The notes: generated by a model not told the origin, from the letters alone. A DNA stretch of 64,000 nt from Setoptus koraiensis (GCA_048013815.1 CM106585.1:16492001-16556000), one strand, 5' to 3'. Shown: positions 21,529 through 56,722, counted from the first letter of the stretch. Translations and numbers: made by a program.

Positions 21529-24123
21529 TCAAATGTCACGGAAATAATTGAATGGTTTCCTTGGTATCTTTGGTATAGCATTAGGTAGTATATTAGGTGT
21601 AACTTCCTGAGTTTGGAAAGCAAAAAATTTAGTTACTAGATCTTCTTCATCATCTTGCTGTTGATTATAATGTCGCAAATTCATATGATTAGTCGATTGA
21701 TGATTGTTTCTCAAAAATGGTGCATTGGATGTCGCATTGAACGAGGCCACATGTACGTCAATGAAAGTTTCCCATCTTTTATACAATTCGGGTCTATTAG
21801 CTTTCATATGGCTAAGATGATCCTTAATTGGATCCAGGTCATCATTTATAGAAAGATAATTTGCTATTTGAACTATGTGTCCAAAATTTGCTTTGTCTGA
21901 GCTCATCTCTTGTGTGAGTTCTGTATCACTAGGTAGAATTCGCTGTATCAAGTCAAACTCGTCAACGAGTTGAGTGAGTAATAATTGCGATGCCATTTCT
22001 TGTTCAGGTACTTTAATTGTTTCGTTTTCACTTTCTTTTTCTTGCTCCTTCTCTTTCTCCTTCTCTTGCACCTTCTCTAGCTCCTTCTCTTGCTCCTTCT
22101 CTTGCACCTTCTCTAGCTCCTTCTCTAGCTCCTTCTCTTGCTCCTTCTCTTGCTCCTTCTCTTGCTCCTTCTCTTGCACCTTCTCTTGCTCCTTCTCTTG
22201 CTCCTTCTCTTGCTCCTTCTCTTGCTCCTTCTCTTGCTCCTTCTCTTGCTCCTTCTCTTGCTCCTTCTCTTGCTCCTTCTCTTGCTCCTTCTCTTGCTCC
22301 TTCTCTTGCACCTTCTCTTGTTCCTTCTCTTGTTCCTTCTCTTGTTCCTTCTCTTGTTCCTTATCATGTTTCTTCTCATCCTCATTTTCCTTCTTCTCTT
22401 TCGTTTCCTCATGATCCGAATTTTCCTCTGCATGCAAACTATCTTCAGTTTTTGCAACTTTCTTATCAACTGCAACATTAGATGCAACTGATGGCGCTTG
22501 TGAGGCAGCTAATGTTACGGCAGCGGCGGCAGCCGCAGCCACGGTTGTTGTTGCTGTTGCCACGAATTGCTTGTCTGCGTCTCTACGATAGTTGTTAACT
22601 ACAAGACACAGAGACTGCTCGACTTGTGTATGTAATAAGTTATTCCATGTGTAATTGACGAATAGATCCAAAATATATTTAATAGTCTTCAATTCCACAA
22701 GCTTCCTGATGATATTTGGACTATTTGTACTGATCAAGGCACGTAAGAGGTGTATTACTTCCAATCTAGTATATCCAAGAGGTTTGGCAATGAGACCACC
22801 GTATGATGTTTTTATCGGCTCTTGCATTGGCGGATCTATAAGTAATTGGTGAAAATAATGTAATTTACCCTCAATTGCAGCTTGGGCCTGACTGATGGCC
22901 TTCGCTAACATGCTAGCGTCCACGCTGTCTGAATAACCAGAATCCTTATCATTATTATCTGACATATCATTATTGCTTTCATGATTGCTGCTCAAATCAA
23001 ACATCCCACCAGGCCATTTTTCAGAGCTTTGATGATTTATATCTAGACAGTTTGTATTGGGTTGGTCCAAATTTTTCCCGTGAAGTATACTGAAAAACAT
23101 TGAAGAAGTAGTTTGATAAACGAATCATAAATGGTTTGGTAAGTTAGTTGTTCGGCTTATGACAGTCTTAGTGTGCGCAAAAACAATCGGTTATACTTAC
23201 TTGTGTCTTTTGTATTCTAATATAGATTGTAAAACATTCATTCCACAAACTAAAGTTGTCGGAGAGGCCTTCTTCAAATCTTCTAATTCTTTAACATCTA
23301 AAAACATTTTGTCTAATAGTAAAGACACAGTCTCTGTCGATTCTAATGACTTGAGTAGAGGATCATGAAAGAACTCAGAGGAATTGTTCTCTGTTGCGTC
23401 AGCAGATGAAGCTTGACGTCCTATTCTTATAATATCACATAAAATCTGACCAGCATTTCTCTGTTTGTCTTCATAATTTCTATCGGACAAGATATCTATC
23501 AATCTATTTATAATATTCTCTTTCTCTAGCAAAGCACAATAACTAAGCCTCATCTCTCTTGGGTTTGTATCTTCTATAAGAGCCCCCAAAATCTCGAGGG
23601 ATCCGGATAAATCGATTGTGTTGAGCAAAAAATCTATTAATTTCTTGAATGTCTTTGTTTCATCTCTAATGATATGACAAAAGAAGTCCTCGCTTCTTTG
23701 AGAATGCATAAACTTAATCAGTTTGCCGATGAAAGTAGTTTTGAGTGGAATAATATTGTAGGTGTTTTCTGTGCCATTAACCAAACATGACAAGATTTTT
23801 TCGATTAAGTTTTTGTCGCAAAATAAGGCATGGGTTATTTCACTAACTCCGCTAGTTAATATCTCACAAGAGATGTAGGCTGCATGAACATGTGAACGGA
23901 GAGATCTATCATTGCATTGAGCCTCTGTCAATGATGTGATATTATCAACTAGATCGACTATGTTCCCCTTTTTGGTTAGGAATTCGATTAGCTTCGGATT
24001 AGAAGTTTTGCATTCTTGTAATATGTCTTCTTCAAATACAATATCTTGCACGGTAACTTCGGGCATTTGAAGGACGATATCGATGGCCGCAATAGTTTCT
24101 GGGAATTGTTCGTTCCAAAACAT
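21529..24123 (-). CDS. PPP6R3: Ser/Thr protein phosphatase 6 regulatory subunit (SAPS/SIT4-associated domain); exons complement(23201..24123) and complement(21529..23089), 827 aa
   Basis: The N-terminus MFW...EEDILQECKTSNPKLIEFL and the segments GYTRLEVIHLLRAL and LDLFVNYTWNNLLHTQVE are SAPS-family motifs. The 111-bp phase-2 intron has a GTAAGT donor at 23200 and a cttcaatgtttttcag acceptor ending at 23090. It joins the two ORFs in frame (923+1561=2484 nt). The symbol is family-level only. Confidence 0.9.
22032..22363 (-). repeat. 12-bp coding tandem repeat, about 28 copies, encoding (EQEK)n inside the SAPS gene
   Basis: The plus strand reads (ttctcttgctcc)n with VQEK, ELEK and EKEK variants. 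Confidence 0.95.
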
Positions 24124-48175: not shown

Positions 48176-50332
48176 ATGGATATTAACCGGTTCGACTCGG
48201 ACGAAACAGACGGCGATGGACAGATATTTTGCCTGCTGGAGACGGTGCCGCCAGAGCTGCTGCTCATGATCATCGGTCATCTGGACGATTTACGCGACAG
48301 ACACAATTTGGCCCAAATGTCGCCGAGATTCAGCGAGCTCGTTTACGACGCCAACAGATTTGTGGAGGAGGCCACTCTCAGTAGCGGGCTTGCCAATTGG
48401 CCAGATTGTCGGGAGCTGGAGTCAATTCTTTGCACGGTGCCCAAAATAGAGCGCCTGAACCTGGTGTCGGAATACGATCAGACGATCAGACGGTTCGGGC
48501 CGGATTCTCATTTCAGTTTGACGGACAATTGCAACCTGCTAACAACGCTCACATTGCACAAAATATCCTTTGCGCCCACGGAACTGGCCTTGCTGGTGTT
48601 GCGGTTGCCACTGTTGACGGCGCTCACACTGGAGCATGTCGAGCTAGACGATGCGGACGAGTTGAACGCCCTGTTGCCCCGACTTTGCCTCACGCTTTTG
48701 CACCTTCGCATAATAGGAATTAAACGGAGACCCTTTTGCGACCACGAGCACGATTATTTCGCACTGCGTTCGCTAGATATTAGGAGAAATCGCATCATGG
48801 ACGATATTAATATCGACGAGCAGCCATCGGCCTACTACGATGCGGCAAATTTTCTCTTGGCGTGCCAACGATTGGACAGTCTCGCCTTAACGTTGACAGA
48901 CGACAAATGGGTGCACCAGTTGACCGGCATTCTGTCCAATACCCATTTGCGTACCCTTGTTCTTGATCAATATTACGGCTGCTGGCCGGCTTCGGATATT
49001 ATTGACGTGCCAACGGTTATTAGCGGCGAGCGAGCTGAACTGCATTACGAACAAAGCGTCACTCCTACCAAACAACTGTCAGAAAATCTCACCTGCCCGA
49101 AGGCGATACGTGATCTGGAGGACAGTGTGTCGTCACTATACAATGATCATTGGCTGCCCGAGTGTCAACAACAAATATCCTCGGTACGCTGGAAACGAGA
49201 ATCTTGCCAAGGAAAACATTTTCTCACAGCGAGACTGGATCGCCACACGCTAGACAGGACATTCACAAGGAAAATCCATCACTCCAACAGGATGCAAATG
49301 ATTGAATACGACAGCAGCGGTAAAAAGTTGTGGTCGGCCGAGGGAGTGCCCATGTTGCGAATCATCAACAGCAAGCGATTTTTGTATTTGAAATTCGAGA
49401 TGGATAACGAGCAAGAATTGAAACGAGGCCGCCCAAAGTCGGGCAATTATTCTGTCATCAACAAGAGTCTACAGCTATTTTATCAGCAGTCGATGGAGAG
49501 GCTGAAAGGAAACATCAGGCGCATCGCAGGCGATACACTATTGCGCGAAATTATCCAAACAAGTTGTGGAGAGGGAAAAAATGTGTGCCACTTGGATTTT
49601 AACACGCTGAGATCGGACGACACAGGCATATGGGTCATAGAGGAGGCCTTGAAATCGGCAATATGTAATAGAGTCGCCATGTTGGTGAGTGAGCTGGACC
49701 AAGAGGCCATCGGCATACTTGACATCGTGTCATTGGCTCACTTGCACAAGACAATATCAGAAAGTGATCGGACACCTTCTACCGGTAATTCAAAAGTGTT
49801 GATATGTGCCGGCAGTGCTGGCTCGCTCGAGGCCATAGCAGAGAAACTACATGAATTAGCTGATTTGAAGGTGAAGATCTTCAGCTCGGCTGACTGTCAG
49901 TCGCACCAATCATCTTTTTCTTATTTTGACGATCTCAATGATGAAGATATTGTCGATGATGAAGATGATGATTACTACGAGAACGTCAATGTCGACAATT
50001 CAAGAATTGATACCAGAGATCTAAAAGTGGAATCGGATATGGGCATGCCTGCTGCACGAAGCATTTTCTTCGAAAACTCCATAGATGATGTTGATTGTAA
50101 CGTTATTTTATGCACTTTTCACGATGCACTCAAACTGTCGTCGTGGACCGAGTTTTTAGTTCATTCTTTCATACTGTACAGATGTAACGAGTTCAGTATG
50201 TCCGATGTGCATCTATTATTCCATTTTCTACCCAAACGTACCACAATTATGTCAGACGGTAGCGAGGTGGACGTTGTGTTCAATAGTTTCAAAAGTATGG
50301 GCTTCAAGCCGAAAAGAATAAAGGATAAATAA
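48176..50332 (+). CDS. F-box/LRR protein fused to a degenerate Upf1-like (SF1B) stalk-1B-RecA1 region, copy 1, 718 aa
   Basis: F-box LETVPPELLLMIIGHLDDLRDRHNLAQMSPRFSELV, followed by LRR-like LxxLxL repeats. Upf1-like segments are ISSVRWKR, LWSAEG, KVLICAGS (49796-49816), AEKLHELADLKV, CNVILCT and VFNSFKSMGFKPKRI. The ATG sits in a caccATGg context. Confidence 0.85.
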   Translation: MDINRFDSDETDGDGQIFCLLETVPPELLLMIIGHLDDLRDRHNLAQMSPRFSELVYDANRFVEEATLSSGLANWPDCRELESILCTVPKIERLNLVSEYDQTIRRFGPDSHFSLTDNCNLLTTLTLHKISFAPTELALLVLRLPLLTALTLEHVELDDADELNALLPRLCLTLLHLRIIGIKRRPFCDHEHDYFALRSLDIRRNRIMDDINIDEQPSAYYDAANFLLACQRLDSLALTLTDDKWVHQLTGILSNTHLRTLVLDQYYGCWPASDIIDVPTVISGERAELHYEQSVTPTKQLSENLTCPKAIRDLEDSVSSLYNDHWLPECQQQISSVRWKRESCQGKHFLTARLDRHTLDRTFTRKIHHSNRMQMIEYDSSGKKLWSAEGVPMLRIINSKRFLYLKFEMDNEQELKRGRPKSGNYSVINKSLQLFYQQSMERLKGNIRRIAGDTLLREIIQTSCGEGKNVCHLDFNTLRSDDTGIWVIEEALKSAICNRVAMLVSELDQEAIGILDIVSLAHLHKTISESDRTPSTGNSKVLICAGSAGSLEAIAEKLHELADLKVKIFSSADCQSHQSSFSYFDDLNDEDIVDDEDDDYYENVNVDNSRIDTRDLKVESDMGMPAARSIFFENSIDDVDCNVILCTFHDALKLSSWTEFLVHSFILYRCNEFSMSDVHLLFHFLPKRTTIMSDGSEVDVVFNSFKSMGFKPKRIKDK

Positions 50333-50774
50333 ATGATCGTACACCCAGCAACTGACCTGTTGACTGCTAGCGTTAGCGTTGCGGCTCGAAGTCGAACCTC
50401 GTCTCAATTTCAATCTATCTTGCCTTTCTTTTCTTTGCACGCTCATTAACGGGACTGTCAACTGGAGAAGTGCTGTAGCGAAAGTGTTGTGAGTTGGTCA
50501 GCATTGTCTGTTTGCACGGACAATGGCGCTTGTTTGTCGGGAATATCTGCTCTCCACTAGTCTGCATCACACTGTCCATTTCAATAATGACCAGCTATGA
50601 TAAAATCCCTCGATTCACCGTCTCTATCATCATCAACATACATCAAGTGAACATCAGCGATCTCGGCCAGATTTTTCTGCAAATTCGTGCAAACTCTTGT
50701 ATCAATTTCATCATTTCCATACTAGCTATTTTACGGCAGTTCCAATAGTGCCTATTACTATATATTCGCAAGCA

Positions 50775-52802
50775 ATGTCAACCAACACTTCGGTCGACCA
50801 GCACAATGAAGGATTTCTCTGGCGCCTGGAAATGCTGCCGCCAGAGCTGTTGCTCATTATCATCGATCATTTGGACGATTTACTCGATCGAACTCGCCTG
50901 GCCAAAGAGTCAGCGAAATTCAGCGAGCTCATAAACCATGCCAACAGATCTTTAGGCAAAGGGGGCATATTCAGTTGCGATATTTCGGATTCGCCATATT
51001 GTCAAGTGTTGGAGCCAATTGTTCGCAAGCTGCCCAAACTAAAACGACTCACCCTCCATTCAGAATGCTATGCCATCAGAAGATTCATGCCAGACTCATA
51101 TTTCAGTTCGTCTGACAACTGCAGCCTACTAACAGCACTCAATTTTCATGGAATATCCTTTGCAACCGATGAACTGACAATGATTGTGACCAATTGTCGC
51201 CAATTGACGACGCTCAAACTGGAAGATGTATTGCTTAGTGACCCTCGCGAACTGAGAAGCGTGTGGAAACTGGTTCAAGACAGGTTGTTGCATCTCAGCG
51301 TGATTGGGGTCATAACCGGGGGGCCCATTGCTGCCTATGGGTGCGTGTTGAGTTCGCTCGATATCAGAAGGAACCGCTATGATGAATGGAGTTATCCATT
51401 CATGGGGGGTCGTCTGTGCGGCCATGGATTTGACTTTCTCCGAAAATGTCCGCAATTGGAGAGCCTATCTGTGACAGTTAGAAAGCCGGAGGAGGTGGAG
51501 CTACTGGCTGAGACCATTACCAACAGCCTATCGCGATTGCGCACCCTCGTTCTCGATCACTACTACGGCCCGTTGCCGAATATTGACGTGCCAACAATTA
51601 TTAGCGGCGAACAAGCTGAATTGCATTATGAGAAAAGCACCGCTCATGCCAAGATATCTGAAAATGTTGCCCGTTTAAAAGCGATACGAAATTTGGAGAA
51701 TAGTGTGCCGGCAATTTACAGTACCCTTTGGTCGCAAGAATATCAACTTAATGTATCGACCGTACAATGGAAACGGAAAAGTTTCTATCATAAGGATAAG
51801 CATTGGCTCTTGGCCAGGGTAGATAACCGCACACTGGACAGCTCATACATGGGAAAAATCGACCCTCATATGCGACTGATCAAATACGGCGACGCGGAAG
51901 CTTCTGAACAGTTGTGGTCAGACGATGTAGTTGTTTCAGTGGAAAGTTTAAAAAGCGAGAGATTTTTATATTTGTACTTAGGGATGGATGAAGAGCAAAT
52001 TGGATTGAAACGCGGCCGATTGGAGAGGGTCAATTTCCGGTTGATCAACGAGCGGAAATTGCATGATCATCACACGGAGATTGACTGTCTAAAACGAAAG
52101 ATGAGACGAATTTCGGGCGATGGGTTGTTGCGCGAAATTATCGAGAAAAGTTGTGGAGACGGGCAAGTGGTGTGTAACTTGGCTTCGAAAAACACACTGA
52201 GACGACGTGAGTTCGCCAATATACACACAGTTGATGAAGCCATCAAATCGGCACTATGCAATCGAGTCACTCTCATGGTGGGTGCGCCGGGACAAGAAGC
52301 GAACAGGATAAAATCTATTGTGTCATTGGCCACTCATTTATACAACACGATACCAGAGCGTCATCGGATTCCTATTAGTTCACGAGTATTAATATGTGCA
52401 GGTAGTGCTCGTTCGCTTGAGGCCATAGCAGAGAAAATCCACGAATTGAGTGAGTTGAAGGTAGAGATATTCAGCTTTCGCACTCATAGGTGGTGTTACT
52501 TCCTTCCCAAAAGATATTTCTCCGAGGGTTTTGGTGATTGCAACGTGATTTTAGGGAATTTGGAGGAGGCACTCAAATTTTCGTCCAAGTTCGAGCTGCT
52601 GATTGATTCATTAATACTATACGAATGTAACGAGTTCAGCATGTCTGATGTTCATCTGCTGTTCCATTTATTGCCCAGGCGAACAGTACTGGTGTCTGAC
52701 AGCAGTGAGGGAGGCACTGTATTCACCAGTTTCAAGAAAATGGGCTTCGACCCAATAATGATGAATGATAAATGTTATAGCAGCGAAGAAAATAAAGAAT
52801 AA
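50775..52802 (+). CDS. F-box/LRR plus degenerate Upf1-like region, copy 2, 675 aa
   Basis: F-box LEMLPPELLLIIIDHLDD, followed by LRRs. Helicase-like segments are ALCNRVTLMVGAPG, RVLICAGS (52386-52406), AEKIHELSELKV and LILYE. Colinear with copies 1 and 3. Confidence 0.85.
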   Translation: MSTNTSVDQHNEGFLWRLEMLPPELLLIIIDHLDDLLDRTRLAKESAKFSELINHANRSLGKGGIFSCDISDSPYCQVLEPIVRKLPKLKRLTLHSECYAIRRFMPDSYFSSSDNCSLLTALNFHGISFATDELTMIVTNCRQLTTLKLEDVLLSDPRELRSVWKLVQDRLLHLSVIGVITGGPIAAYGCVLSSLDIRRNRYDEWSYPFMGGRLCGHGFDFLRKCPQLESLSVTVRKPEEVELLAETITNSLSRLRTLVLDHYYGPLPNIDVPTIISGEQAELHYEKSTAHAKISENVARLKAIRNLENSVPAIYSTLWSQEYQLNVSTVQWKRKSFYHKDKHWLLARVDNRTLDSSYMGKIDPHMRLIKYGDAEASEQLWSDDVVVSVESLKSERFLYLYLGMDEEQIGLKRGRLERVNFRLINERKLHDHHTEIDCLKRKMRRISGDGLLREIIEKSCGDGQVVCNLASKNTLRRREFANIHTVDEAIKSALCNRVTLMVGAPGQEANRIKSIVSLATHLYNTIPERHRIPISSRVLICAGSARSLEAIAEKIHELSELKVEIFSFRTHRWCYFLPKRYFSEGFGDCNVILGNLEEALKFSSKFELLIDSLILYECNEFSMSDVHLLFHLLPRRTVLVSDSSEGGTVFTSFKKMGFDPIMMNDKCYSSEENKE

Positions 52803-53180
52803 TAAAAAACCATCTAGTTGGAAAGCTGTTCGTGCGAATTAGGTAACACCCAACGACTAATTGACCGAAAATGTGGTTAAAGTTTTGATTTTATCAGAAT
52901 TGATGAAGATTTTTACATTATTGTGACAGACAGAGATGGCAGTTAATGTAAATTGTTGATCACATGCACATTCTCAAAATTACCATTAGAAATATACTGA
53001 TTAGTGGAGTAAATTTTGTTGATGCTTCTCATGTCGTTCGACGATACTTGTTATAGCAACGACAGCTTGCAATAAAAAATAAATAACCATCCAGATGGAA
53101 AGCACTATTCGCACCGATCGGGTGACATGCTCTTGCATCGGCTACCTGTCGCGGCGAACGGTCATTGGAGTCGGCTGTTG

Positions 53181-53700
53181 ACCAGCTACTGACCTGTCGA
53201 CTGCTCTCGTCAGCATGCGCCTCAACGCGGCTCGAAGTTGAACTTAGTCTCTCAATTTCGTCCGATCTCACCTTTCTTCTCTATGCACACTCACCCGCTC
53301 TGAGCACGGGTCACGGCGCATTCTCGAGTGTCGATCGGAAATGTGTGCTGGCGAAAGTGTTGTGATTTGGTCAGTTTGTGTCTGTTTGCACGGACAATGG
53401 CGCTGGTCCATTCGAAGTAGCTGCTGACCACTTGTTCGCGCCACAATGTCCAACTGAACGATGGCCAACAATGGTCAAATATTCATTCAAAGATTCATTA
53501 TCTCTATCATCATTTGCGATGACTCAGCGGTGATGATGGTCGCCAGCATACGTCAACTGAACCATGAGCATCGTTTGTCTCGTCAATGTTGTTGTGCCTG
53601 CTCTTGCAAACTGTCGCATCAATTTCATCAATTACTACCTTCATTTGTAGACTGTGTCCGGTTTAATTCAACAGCAATTCCCGTTCTCAATCGACTTCAT
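53181..53700 (+). repeat. Diverged duplicate of the intergenic/upstream segment 50344-50710 that precedes F-box copy 2
   Basis: Shared blocks in the same order include ctgacctgtNgactgct, gcggctcgaagt, gcgaaagtgttgtgaNttggtcag, tgtctgtttgcacggacaatggcgct and atcaatttcatca. Confidence 0.85.
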
Positions 53701-53949
53701 CGACCGTGTATCACTGGATATTTGTAAGCAGCCATTTTGTCAGTGAAAAACTGAGCGAAAAAAGGGGCCATGTGGACCTACGAGGAACCTTTCGACCTGC
53801 TTGTCCTGGTCGCCATCGCTGGTGTTGCTATTGTGGCTTATTTCAGCAATTTAGAGTTGGAGCAGAGAGCCGTGGCGGTGGCAGTGGCAAGCGTTCACAT
53901 TGGCGAGATGGTCAAGCGTTGGAGCCACTTGTTTGCGAGCTGTTCACAG

Positions 53950-54050
53950 TGACTCCACTCTGCAACCGGAACACAATCAAGTCCAGAGGCTCCGTTTATT
54001 GCTGACCAGTGTCGCTCGCTATCGACACTCAATTTGCACAGAATATCCCC
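53950..54050 (+). pseudogene. Remnant of a fourth F-box/LRR copy
   Basis: One frame reads LHS...DQCRSLSTLNLHRIS (54004-54048), matching DNFCKLSTLNLHRIS in copy 3. The DNA tcgacactcaatttgcacagaatatcc is near-identical to copy 3. An in-frame stop lies at 53950-53952 and there is no intact ORF. Confidence 0.7.
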
Positions 54051-54421
54051 GCAAAACACGGAATGTCCCCGGAAAATTCGCACGAACTGAGCATTGGTGT
54101 CGGTTTCGGCCAACAGGATGGATGACGGCGCTCGTTGCTGCTTGTGCGCAGCACGCACTCCGCTCACCTGAACGATGACCAGCCACGGTCCAAAGCGATG
54201 AGTCATTGTGTCCGTTATCATCGCTCATTCATCATCTGAGTCAGAGCATCGGAGTTTCGGTGCTAGTTCCGGCAAACTCTGCAAAACTAATGTGACTATT
54301 GTATCGACGGCCACATCATTTATATGCCACATCAAATCAACAAGTTGTTGTTTTACACGCGCAGGTCCGAAAATTATTCCGAAAATTAACTGACCGGTGT
54401 GCCGTCACATGCTCACGAGCA

Positions 54422-56569
54422 ATGTCGACCAACTATCGCGCCGACCGGCCCGCGGATGCCACTGGAACGAGGAGCCACGGAGGATCTTTCTGTCGCCTGC
54501 ATAGGCTGCCGCCCGAGCTGTTGCTCGTCATCATCGGTCATTTGGACGATTTGCTCGATCGGCACAATTTTGGCCAAGTTTCGGCGACTCTCAGCGAGCT
54601 CGTCCACTATGCCAACAAATTTATAGAGGGCGCCACTCTCAGTGGAGGGCTCGTGATGAGGCCAAATTGTCAAGCCAGATTGGGCCCGATTGTTGGCCGC
54701 ATGCCCAGAACAATGAGCAGCCCAATGAGGAGATTCGCGCCGGACTCACATTTGTTGTTGACGGCGGACAACTTTTGCAAATTGTCAACGCTCAATTTGC
54801 ACAGAATATCCTTTGCGCCCACGGAACTGACCAGAATTGTGACCAAGTGTCGCTTGTTGACAACGCTCAAACTCGATAATGTCGTGCTGGATGATGCTTT
54901 CGAATTGAGAAAATTGTTGCCCCTGGTCAAGGACAGCTTGTTGCATCTCACCGTGTGGGGCCTCAAAAGTCCGACGTTTCAGTATTGCCTCGCTGAGTGC
55001 GTGTTGCGTTCGCTAGATATCCGAAGGAATATCTTCGAAGCGATGTCACGGGACGAAGAATTCGACATTAATTATTCTCAAGCGCATTGCTTTCTCAGGG
55101 CATGTCCGCTATTGGAGAGCCTATCGGTGACATTGAGACATCAGATACATGTTCGGTGGCTGGCAAATGCCATTTTCAAGCGCCCGCTGCGCACCCTGGT
55201 GCTCGATCAATATTACGGCCCGATGCCCGATTTCGAGGTGCCAACAGTTGTTAGCGGAAAACAAGCCGATGTACATTTTCAACAACAAAGCGATGCCCAT
55301 GCGGCGACATCCCCGGAAATTTCGTGCTGCCCGAAAGCGATACGCGATCTAGAGAATCGCGTATTGTCAATCTACAACGAATATTGGCTGCCAGACTGTC
55401 GACAAAAAATATCGACCGTACGATGGAAGCGAATATCTCGCCCCGGCTCGTTCGAGACTGAACATTTTCTCGTGGCGCTGATAGATCGCCGGATGCTGGA
55501 CAGGTCGTTCACAAAAAAAGTGTATCCCAGCAACAAGATGCAAATGATAGAGTATGACAGCGCGGGCGGTGAGCGGTTGTGGTCAGCCATAGGAGTACCT
55601 GTGCTGGGTCTCATGGATAACAAGCGATTTTTTTATCTAGAATTCAGGATGCGAGACGAGCGAAAATTGCAAGGCTGCAACCGCCCAGAATCGGGCAATT
55701 ATTTGCTGATCAACAAGAGCTATTTGCGAATATTCCAGAGCTCCATCGACAAACTAAAACAAAACATAAAACGGACCGCCAGCGATGCGTTGCTGCGTGA
55801 AATTATCGAGAAAAGTTGCGACGGCCAAGACGCCCAAGTTGTGTGTAGCTTGCCTGCCAAAAATGCGCTGCGATCAGATGAGCAAGCCGAGCGAATACCC
55901 ATGAATGAGGCCATGAGGTCGGCGGTTTCCAATAGAGTCACTCTCATGCTGAGCGAACCGGCACCATGGTCCGTCAAGATAAACTCTATCGTGTCGTTGG
56001 CGACTTATTTATTCAAGACAATACCCGTATGCGTCCCTACTAAGCGTCCTAGTTCGAAGGTGCTGATATGTGCGGGCAGTGGTGTTCCGCTCGCGACCAT
56101 TGCCGGCAAAATTCACGGATTGAGGGAGTCGGAGGTGAGGATATTCAGCACCACACACTGTCAGCTGCAGCAATCATCTTTCTCATCTTATTGTGAGGGC
56201 CCCCTCGATGAAGATATTGCTGACAATGGGAACGGCGACGAATTTCTTCCCGATCCTGAAAATTTGGTAGTTGATGCCAGAATTTGGACAGTAAACTCAC
56301 AGGATAGTTCAGTGACAAGCGCTATTCTCTCTAGTTGTAACGTGATTTTGTGCACTTGCCGTGATGCATTCAAATTGCCATCGCTGACCGACCTGATAAT
56401 TGATTCTTTAATACTTTACAAATGTGACGAGCTCAGCCCATCTGATGTGGGTCTGCTGTTGCATTGGTCACCCAGGCGGACACTGTTGGTGTCCGAGAGT
56501 GGCGAAGAGGGCGCTGCATTCGCCAGTTTCAAGAGGATGGGCTTCGAGCCGGTCAAGCTGACACTTTGA
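54422..56569 (+). CDS. F-box/LRR plus degenerate Upf1-like region, copy 3, 715 aa
   Basis: F-box LHRLPPELLLVIIGHLDD, followed by LRRs. Helicase-like segments are ISTVRWKR, KVLICAGS (56060-56080), CNVILCT and AFASFKRMGFEPVKL. The start context gagcaATGtcgacc matches copy 2 (aagcaATGtcaacc). Confidence 0.85.
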   Translation: MSTNYRADRPADATGTRSHGGSFCRLHRLPPELLLVIIGHLDDLLDRHNFGQVSATLSELVHYANKFIEGATLSGGLVMRPNCQARLGPIVGRMPRTMSSPMRRFAPDSHLLLTADNFCKLSTLNLHRISFAPTELTRIVTKCRLLTTLKLDNVVLDDAFELRKLLPLVKDSLLHLTVWGLKSPTFQYCLAECVLRSLDIRRNIFEAMSRDEEFDINYSQAHCFLRACPLLESLSVTLRHQIHVRWLANAIFKRPLRTLVLDQYYGPMPDFEVPTVVSGKQADVHFQQQSDAHAATSPEISCCPKAIRDLENRVLSIYNEYWLPDCRQKISTVRWKRISRPGSFETEHFLVALIDRRMLDRSFTKKVYPSNKMQMIEYDSAGGERLWSAIGVPVLGLMDNKRFFYLEFRMRDERKLQGCNRPESGNYLLINKSYLRIFQSSIDKLKQNIKRTASDALLREIIEKSCDGQDAQVVCSLPAKNALRSDEQAERIPMNEAMRSAVSNRVTLMLSEPAPWSVKINSIVSLATYLFKTIPVCVPTKRPSSKVLICAGSGVPLATIAGKIHGLRESEVRIFSTTHCQLQQSSFSSYCEGPLDEDIADNGNGDEFLPDPENLVVDARIWTVNSQDSSVTSAILSSCNVILCTCRDAFKLPSLTDLIIDSLILYKCDELSPSDVGLLLHWSPRRTLLVSESGEEGAAFASFKRMGFEPVKLTL

Positions 56570-56589: not shown

Positions 56590-56722
56590 AAGACCCCCAA
56601 AAGCCCCAAACCTCAAACCTCAAGACTCCCAAAACCCGAAAGCCCCAAAACTCAAGACTCCCGAAACCCAAAACCCAAAATTCCCAAAACTCAAGAGTCA
56701 AGACTCCCAATACCCAAAACTC
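56590..56722 (+). repeat. Degenerate C/A-rich repeat (cccaaaac / ctcaagact)
   Basis: Read directly; it lies between the stop codons of F-box copy 3 and the GPCR. Confidence 0.8.

Follow-up and report, generated by a model that had tools for sequence, protein, structure and literature searches.

A previously undescribed combination of F-box, leucine-rich repeats, and UPF1-like half-helicase in a tandem gene family of Setoptus koraiensis

What might an F-box protein do with half of a helicase? The question is raised by a gene cluster in Setoptus koraiensis, which we analyzed within a stretch of 64,000 nucleotides (GCA_048013815.1, CM106585.1:16492001-16556000; hereafter, the window). Three tandem, intronless plus-strand genes, c1, c2, and c3, encode proteins of 718, 675, and 715 amino acids (open reading frames [ORFs] taken from the first ATG) that align end to end at 44-50% pairwise amino acid identity. 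An initial annotation of the window had described three colinear ORFs of 675-718 residues, which we found where it placed them, and had read each as an F-box with leucine-rich repeat (LRR)-like repeats fused to part of the RNA helicase UPF1. Our analysis indicates that the combination of F-box/LRR and half-helicase is a previously undescribed, lineage-restricted domain arrangement within the known F-box proteins. Below, we consider each half in turn, then where the fusion came from, and finally what it may do.

The N-terminal half is recognizable by profile as an F-box, followed by an LRR solenoid as in the FBXL subclass. On single window proteins, the Pfam F-box-like model gives E values from 1.6e-4 (c1) to 0.07, with 21.8 bits versus a cut-off of 24.3; the same segment passes the cut-off, at 26-38 bits, in the relatives P0001-P0004 described below. 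No other N-terminal columns in the family are as well conserved as those in this segment. A seven-member profile, built from F-box family members only and without any true helicase, matched the F-box/LRR receptors TIR1 and COI1 in the PDB at an E value of about 7e-4 over its N-terminal part, and Foldseek with the N-terminal half returned FBXL2-SKP1, SKP2, TIR1, and D3/MAX2. Altogether, the relatives' Pfam scores, the profile match, and the fold bear out the F-box and repeats of the initial annotation. FBXL-type proteins (SKP2, FBXL2, TIR1, COI1, and MAX2/D3) share with the family an F-box and then a curved LRR solenoid, but they end at the LRR, which serves as the substrate or ligand receptor, whereas the family adds a pseudo-helicase module of about 420 residues.

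What is this added module? Its RecA1 domain is homologous to AAA_11 and has a stalk and 1B barrel inserted, although significance needed family profiles because single window proteins fall under the Pfam gathering scores (AAA_11 E values of 0.0045 for c3 and 0.02 for c2; 17.2 bits versus 27). A profile of the three paralogues gave no significant PDB match to UPF1 (E value of 1.8); significance was reached once four relatives from the exhaustive search described below had been added. With the seven-member profile, human and yeast UPF1 matched at E values of 9.4e-15 to 7e-13 over profile positions 485-703, which make up the RecA1 part, and Sen1 matched the same region at 9e-7. In the relative P0001, AAA_11 scores above the curated cut-off (41 bits). 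The profile check proposed with the initial annotation came out in favor of UPF1/AAA_11 likeness. Against 1.84 billion proteins, the three-paralogue profile found the full-length helicase P0006 at an E value of 1.4e-27, and residues 23-434 of another helicase, P0026, matched c3 (55388-56563) by tblastn at 1e-13. An ESM Atlas feature search pointed at AAA_11 clusters (score 0.73), which we took as a lead only.

Structure prediction gave the same picture. The AlphaFold model of full-length c1 (predicted local distance difference test [pLDDT] of 65, predicted template modeling score [pTM] of 0.41) runs in order through an F-box helical bundle, about nine LRR units, a disordered linker, a stalk/1B arrangement, and an alpha/beta RecA-like domain; the C-terminal half modeled separately (c1 296-718) reached a pLDDT of 68 and a pTM of 0.67. 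In the c1 model, the stalk/1B part has a helix (308-330), a barrel of six to seven strands (331-429), and two long helices (430-463), with a pLDDT of 72-88, and a poorly modeled acidic insert splits the RecA-like domain at the place of UPF1's 1C. Foldseek with the model of the C-terminal half, a check that had likewise been proposed at the outset, ranked UPF1 structures at the top (E value of 1e-14), followed by IGHMBP2, Sen1/SETX, ZNFX1, DNA2, and Aquarius. VIA-align placed model residues 10-423 on human UPF1 297-701, a stretch that begins where the helicase core does and closes with RecA1, with a Z score of 15.5 and 309 aligned residues. Chance similarity to UPF1 was rejected on the E values of the profile, Foldseek, and tblastn matches.

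When the window proteins were aligned by MAFFT with UPF1 orthologues from the database, the motif matches to UPF1 quoted in the initial annotation came out again. ISSVRWKR aligns to the V(R/K)W strand at the entry to domain 1B, IEYDSS.GKKLWSAEG aligns to the ..GxxWxxxG strand, and the window motif quoted against SFDRM aligns to UPF1's SFDRM helix. Within RecA1, NRVTLMVGAPG aligns to the Walker A strand, VLICAGS to motif Ia, CNVILCT to the (V/I)ICCT strand, and LPRRT..SD to motif III, while SFKxMGFxP aligns to the L..GxxP segment right before motif IV. UPF1/Nam7, the superfamily 1B (SF1B) helicase of nonsense-mediated mRNA decay (NMD; PDB 2xzo, 2gjk, 2wjv, and 8rd3), is the best solved-structure match both by profile (E value of 9.4e-15) and by fold, and the order of stalk, 1B barrel, and RecA1 is shared, with the motif-I strand, motif Ia, ICCT strand, and motif III positions recognizable.

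The catalytic residues at these positions are gone. Walker A, which reads GPPGTGKT in active relatives (UPF1 and P0011), is SELDQEAI in c1, GAPGQEAN in c2, and SEPAPWSV in c3; the DExxQ of motif II is replaced by LY(R/E/K)C(N/D)E and the GDxxQL of motif III by SDGSE-like sequence in all three. Neither the window proteins nor P0001, P0002, P0003, and P0007 carry Walker A (GxxGxGKT), motif II (DE), or motif III (GDxxQL). In place of 1C, c1 and c3 have acidic low-complexity sequence; c2 retains only 20 residues there. Since the Walker A, II, and III motifs are lost and 1C is eroded, the half-helicase, judged from its sequence, cannot be an ATPase, and it would be a poor candidate for a UPF1-style RNA clamp, a role we consider unlikely.

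The second RecA domain is missing altogether. All members end 3-9 residues short of QYRMHP (motif IV, the first element of RecA2), and they have no RecA2 (AAA_12, motifs IV-VI). RecA2-like coding sequence was found nowhere in the 64-kb window, and a hidden downstream RecA2 exon was rejected there on this ground. At the other end, the CH zinc-knuckle (PF09416) has no match in the window copies or their relatives, and the F-box/LRR sits in its place. With no CH domain, and with nearest full-length relatives that also lack one and are only 33-37% identical to UPF1, these proteins are not UPF1 orthologues: UPF1's CH domain, RecA2, Walker A GKT, DE, and SQ tail have no counterpart in the family, and its N terminus is F-box/LRR, unlike that of UPF1. 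A helicase as an SCF (Skp1-Cul1-F-box) subunit has a precedent in FBH1/FBXO18, an F-box protein with SF1 helicase sequence. FBH1, however, is a complete, active UvrD-type (SF1A) DNA helicase with no LRR, whereas the family has half of an SF1B helicase without the catalytic motifs. No member matched the UvrD-helicase model PF00580 at reporting thresholds of E 10 for the window copies and 0.1 for the relatives; with a helicase half that is SF1B-like and incomplete, the family is not of the FBH1 type.

How widely is this architecture distributed? A word-indexed protein homologue search with c3 found nothing. An exhaustive hidden Markov model search covering 1.84 billion cluster representatives found 11 proteins. 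Four of these (P0001, P0002, P0003, and P0007) are full-length relatives from another organism, about 22% identical, with the same domain order and end point. P0004 is an F-box/LRR-only relative of 298 amino acids (E value of 2e-33 to the N-terminal half; L007:1354-2250, SRR33593474), which could stand for the kind of gene that donated the F-box/LRR part, or could have been shortened secondarily; it ends ahead of a convergent threonyl-tRNA synthetase (ThrRS) gene. P0005 and P0008 are fragments, and P0009 and P0010 are generic matches with LRR or F-box likeness only. P0006 and P0011 (the latter at an E value of 1e-4) are complete SF1B helicases that match only the C-terminal half of the profile (about 340-710). 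The full-length relatives and three helicases without a CH domain (P0006, P0011, and P0026) all come from one unannotated Logan assembly, SRR33593474. Another member, at L008:209-2167 (SRR18067581), is about 43% identical to c1 and has a frameshift near 593-611, marking either a pseudogene or an assembly error. As the initial annotation had surmised, the architecture appears undescribed: no named source that we searched annotates an F-box-LRR-half-helicase arrangement or names these proteins, none of the AlphaFold DB cluster representatives gave a match covering both halves, and a literature search that combined F-box with UPF1-like or AAA_11 brought up no relevant paper.

The closest full-length relatives of the half-helicase are P0006, P0011, and P0026, fast-evolving UPF1-like helicases, which have the NRV(T/S)L, SKILICA, and LPRR motifs in common with the family but, unlike it, keep RecA2 (AAA_12) and are without an F-box or LRR. 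Among solved SF1B helicases, UPF1 is by a wide margin the best match to both P0006 (E value of 3e-53, versus 3e-29 for Sen1) and P0011 (1e-68 versus 7e-37). Beyond its own sample, the best database matches of P0011 are true UPF1 orthologues, at 33-37% identity. P0011 keeps all ATPase motifs. P0006 (L002:892-3366) has a K-to-V change in Walker A and a DE-to-NE change, and it is apparently a complete but dead helicase. Where the family has F-box/LRR, P0006 has a strongly hydrophobic N terminus, which from its sequence is a possible membrane anchor.

In an IQ-TREE phylogeny of the shared region, the F-box proteins form one clade (support 94/91), with P0006 as its sister (98/90) and P0011 plus P0026 next (100/100). 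The F-box proteins and CH-less helicases together sit on a long branch, separate from the UPF1 orthologues. The tree took in three groups, and rooting it on one of them, the archaeal proteins, makes the other two sisters by construction; P0004, P0005, P0008, the frameshifted L008/L009, SETX, IGHMBP2, MOV10, and ZNFX1 were left out. With only three groups in the tree, the CH-less clade is therefore unplaced relative to UPF1 and other SF1B subfamilies. On this phylogeny, F-box and half-helicase were joined a single time, the helicase part coming from a CH-less UPF1-like paralogue. Stepwise decay makes the simplest history, in which an active CH-less UPF1-like paralogue gave rise to a dead full-length copy, which was then truncated after RecA1 and fused to a P0004-type F-box/LRR gene. 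The "Upf1-derived half-helicase" of the initial annotation thus holds as a stalk/1B/RecA1 half cut at the RecA1/RecA2 border, but its source is a lineage-specific UPF1-like paralogue and not canonical UPF1.

What, then, could a dead half-helicase do? We favor, as more probable than not, the reading that these proteins are SCF substrate receptors with a pseudo-helicase recognition module, which is the most likely function in light of what is established for F-box proteins. The F-box would dock on Skp1, and the LRR and pseudo-helicase half would together form a passive binding surface. This surface would recognize a partner, most likely a protein or ribonucleoprotein (RNP) that normally contacts related helicases, and the bound partner would be presented for ubiquitination. 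As for NMD in particular, homology is the only thing that points to a link. Judging from its rapid divergence, its tandem duplication, and the presence of a decayed copy, the family appears to be in evolutionary flux, as F-box expansions typically are.

The shared helicase surfaces could also be put to use without any target being destroyed. The dead half might act as a regulator or dominant-negative mimic that competes for a cofactor or RNP site also used by the CH-less UPF1-like helicases (P0011 type) or by UPF1; the F-box/LRR would then serve just for localization or for control of the protein's own turnover. The stalk/1B/RecA1 surfaces held in common with P0006, P0011, and P0026, including the clade-specific LPRR motif and ILICA strand, fit this idea, and the inactive full-length sister P0006 implies that noncatalytic roles predate the fusion. 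However, the F-box is the best conserved N-terminal segment, suggesting selection for Skp1 binding, and with 1C eroded or deleted, mimicry of the RNA-bound state is unlikely. We regard a mimic as an unlikely, though arguable, explanation. A more speculative idea, and one to which we give little credence, draws on the integrated decoy domains of plant nucleotide-binding leucine-rich repeat immune receptors. By analogy, the half-helicase may resemble UPF1-like restriction helicases on its surface and so lure the viral or transposon factors that attack them, with the F-box sending the bound factor to SCF for destruction. If true, this would explain the tandem expansion, fast divergence, and copy turnover, and RNA-surveillance mimicry would be wired to ubiquitin-based immunity in a way not seen before.

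Several points weigh against proteins that work as SCF receptors with a UPF1-like module. The F-box of c1-c3 lies under the Pfam cut-off when scored alone, model confidence is moderate (pLDDT of 65-68), and superpositions on UPF1 have a high root mean square deviation of 8-9 A, which we attribute to domain orientation and model quality. The three-group tree leaves the place of the CH-less clade among UPF1 and other SF1B subfamilies unsettled. Public-run contigs cross the junction of both halves (e.g., 54968-55769), but such contigs do not by themselves prove transcription. No splice joints inside the ORFs were seen in the run contigs, which agrees with intronless genes but proves nothing. Finally, dN/dS reaches 0.64, a sign of relaxed constraint.

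Are the genes then simply nonfunctional, as chimeric debris of exon shuffling or decaying duplicates whose frames happen still to be open? Relaxed constraint and the lack of proven transcription would fit, as would a decayed fourth copy between c2 and c3 and the frameshift in L008. Yet the three frames of about 2 kb are all open, and each ORF is intact over more than 2 kb although dS between the paralogues is about 0.7-1.2. Across the F-box/LRR, stalk/1B, and RecA1 parts, dN/dS is 0.27-0.64, and 0.3-0.55 for the family; at a divergence of about 50%, it thus stays below 1 in every domain, which indicates, as far as sequence comparison goes, a family under purifying but relaxed selection. In addition, both the architecture and the C-terminal end point recur in another organism, in relatives whose identity is only about 22%. 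Nonfunctional copies are thus a very improbable explanation, and we retain the substrate receptor as the preferred one.

Could the genes instead be carried by a transposable element or an endogenous virus? The setting of the cluster bears on this. Certain viral genomes do contain genes for F-box proteins and SF1 helicases. Over 50650-53050, public-run contigs of 90-99% likeness are stacked on c2, 4-10 times as deep as over c3, which points to additional close paralogues or divergent alleles at other sites in the genome; such further close copies would count in favor of mobile cargo. F-box families are also known to capture foreign domains (PMC12062965), which would suit such an origin. Nevertheless, the copies lie head to tail with duplicated upstream regions, as in ordinary tandem duplication: 50345-50633 resembles 53182-53513 (blastn, 67%). 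The neighbors are ordinary animal genes, with host-like ORFs on both flanks, including a rhodopsin-type G protein-coupled receptor (GPCR) ORF on the minus strand immediately downstream and, farther off on the upstream side, homeodomain, SAPS, and NRF-domain ORFs. Relatives in the other organism likewise adjoin housekeeping genes (e.g., Rer1, septin, and ThrRS). A direct-repeat scan gave only paralogue-to-paralogue repeats, with no dedicated scan for transposases, integrases, or terminal repeats made. We consider mobile cargo extremely improbable.

The features of the cluster are collected in Table 1. The fourth-copy remnant is colinear with c2, as further blastn pairs show (53602-53633/50685-50716, 53899-53942/50989-51032, and 54022-54048/54785-54811), and it has no protein-level match by tblastn. 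In the same intergenic region, run contigs differ from the window in length, with a 17-nucleotide insertion after 53635 and a 40-nucleotide tandem duplication at 54037-54076. A short array (56596-56719) of C/A-rich repeats of about 23 nucleotides (CCCAAAAC... type), in 5 overlapping copies, closely follows the stop codon of c3 and lies in the space between c3 and the convergent GPCR gene. Far upstream, at 21529-24123 on the minus strand, two adjoining ORFs both match the SAPS (SIT4 phosphatase-associated) family and are probably two exons of one PP6 regulatory-subunit gene; their closest database relatives mostly have about 22% query coverage at 59-69% identity, and the single long match has 86% coverage at 35% identity.

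Table 1. Genes, domains, and motif sites of the F-box/half-helicase cluster, in window positions
Feature	Position	Strand	Description	Evidence
Gene c1	48176-50332	+	718 aa; F-box, LRR, stalk/1B, dead RecA1	ORF calls, AlphaFold models, paralogue alignment
c1 F-box	48239-48349	+	Residues 22-58; LPPELLLMII.HLDD...	
c1 LRRs	48359-49030	+	Residues 62-285; about nine beta-strand/helix units	Model secondary structure
c1 stalk helices and 1B-like beta-barrel	49097-49564	+	Residues 308-463	Model, VIA alignment, multiple alignment with UPF1 orthologues
c1 RecA1-like domain without catalytic motifs	49625-50329	+	Residues 484-718	Family profile, motif table
c1 Walker A site	49682-49711	+	Reads LVSELDQEAI	
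c1 acidic low-complexity stretch in place of 1C	49889-50095	+		
c1 motif II site	50165-50191	+	Reads SFILYRCNE	
Gene c2	50775-52802	+	675 aa	ORF calls, paralogue alignment, motif table
c2 F-box	50829-50939	+		
c2 LRR	50949-51611	+		
c2 stalk/1B	51675-52151	+		
c2 RecA1-like domain	52215-52772	+		
c2 Walker A site		+	Reads MVGAPGQEAN	
Decayed fourth-copy remnant between c2 and c3	53182-54048	+	Upstream part plus initial ~400 nt of a former coding sequence; no open frame	
Gene c3	54422-56569	+	715 aa	ORF calls, paralogue alignment, motif table
c3 F-box	54500-54610	+		
c3 LRR	54620-55261	+		
c3 stalk/1B	55331-55816	+		
c3 RecA1-like domain	55886-56563	+		
c3 Walker A site		+	Reads MLSEPAPWSV	

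The choice of substrates by SCF ligases lies with their F-box proteins, so that a new C-terminal module means a new class of targets. The combination described here has so far been seen in a few unannotated genomes only, and it will be of interest mainly to helicase, pseudo-enzyme, and ubiquitin specialists. To them, the family shows that a stalk/1B/RecA1 unit can fold and persist without RecA2, and it offers a natural series, from an active CH-less helicase through a dead full-length copy to a truncated half joined to an F-box, in which to study how motors turn into pseudo-enzymes and binding scaffolds. If the partner proves to be a factor common to UPF1-like helicases, the family would tie RNA surveillance or antiviral helicase pathways to ubiquitination.

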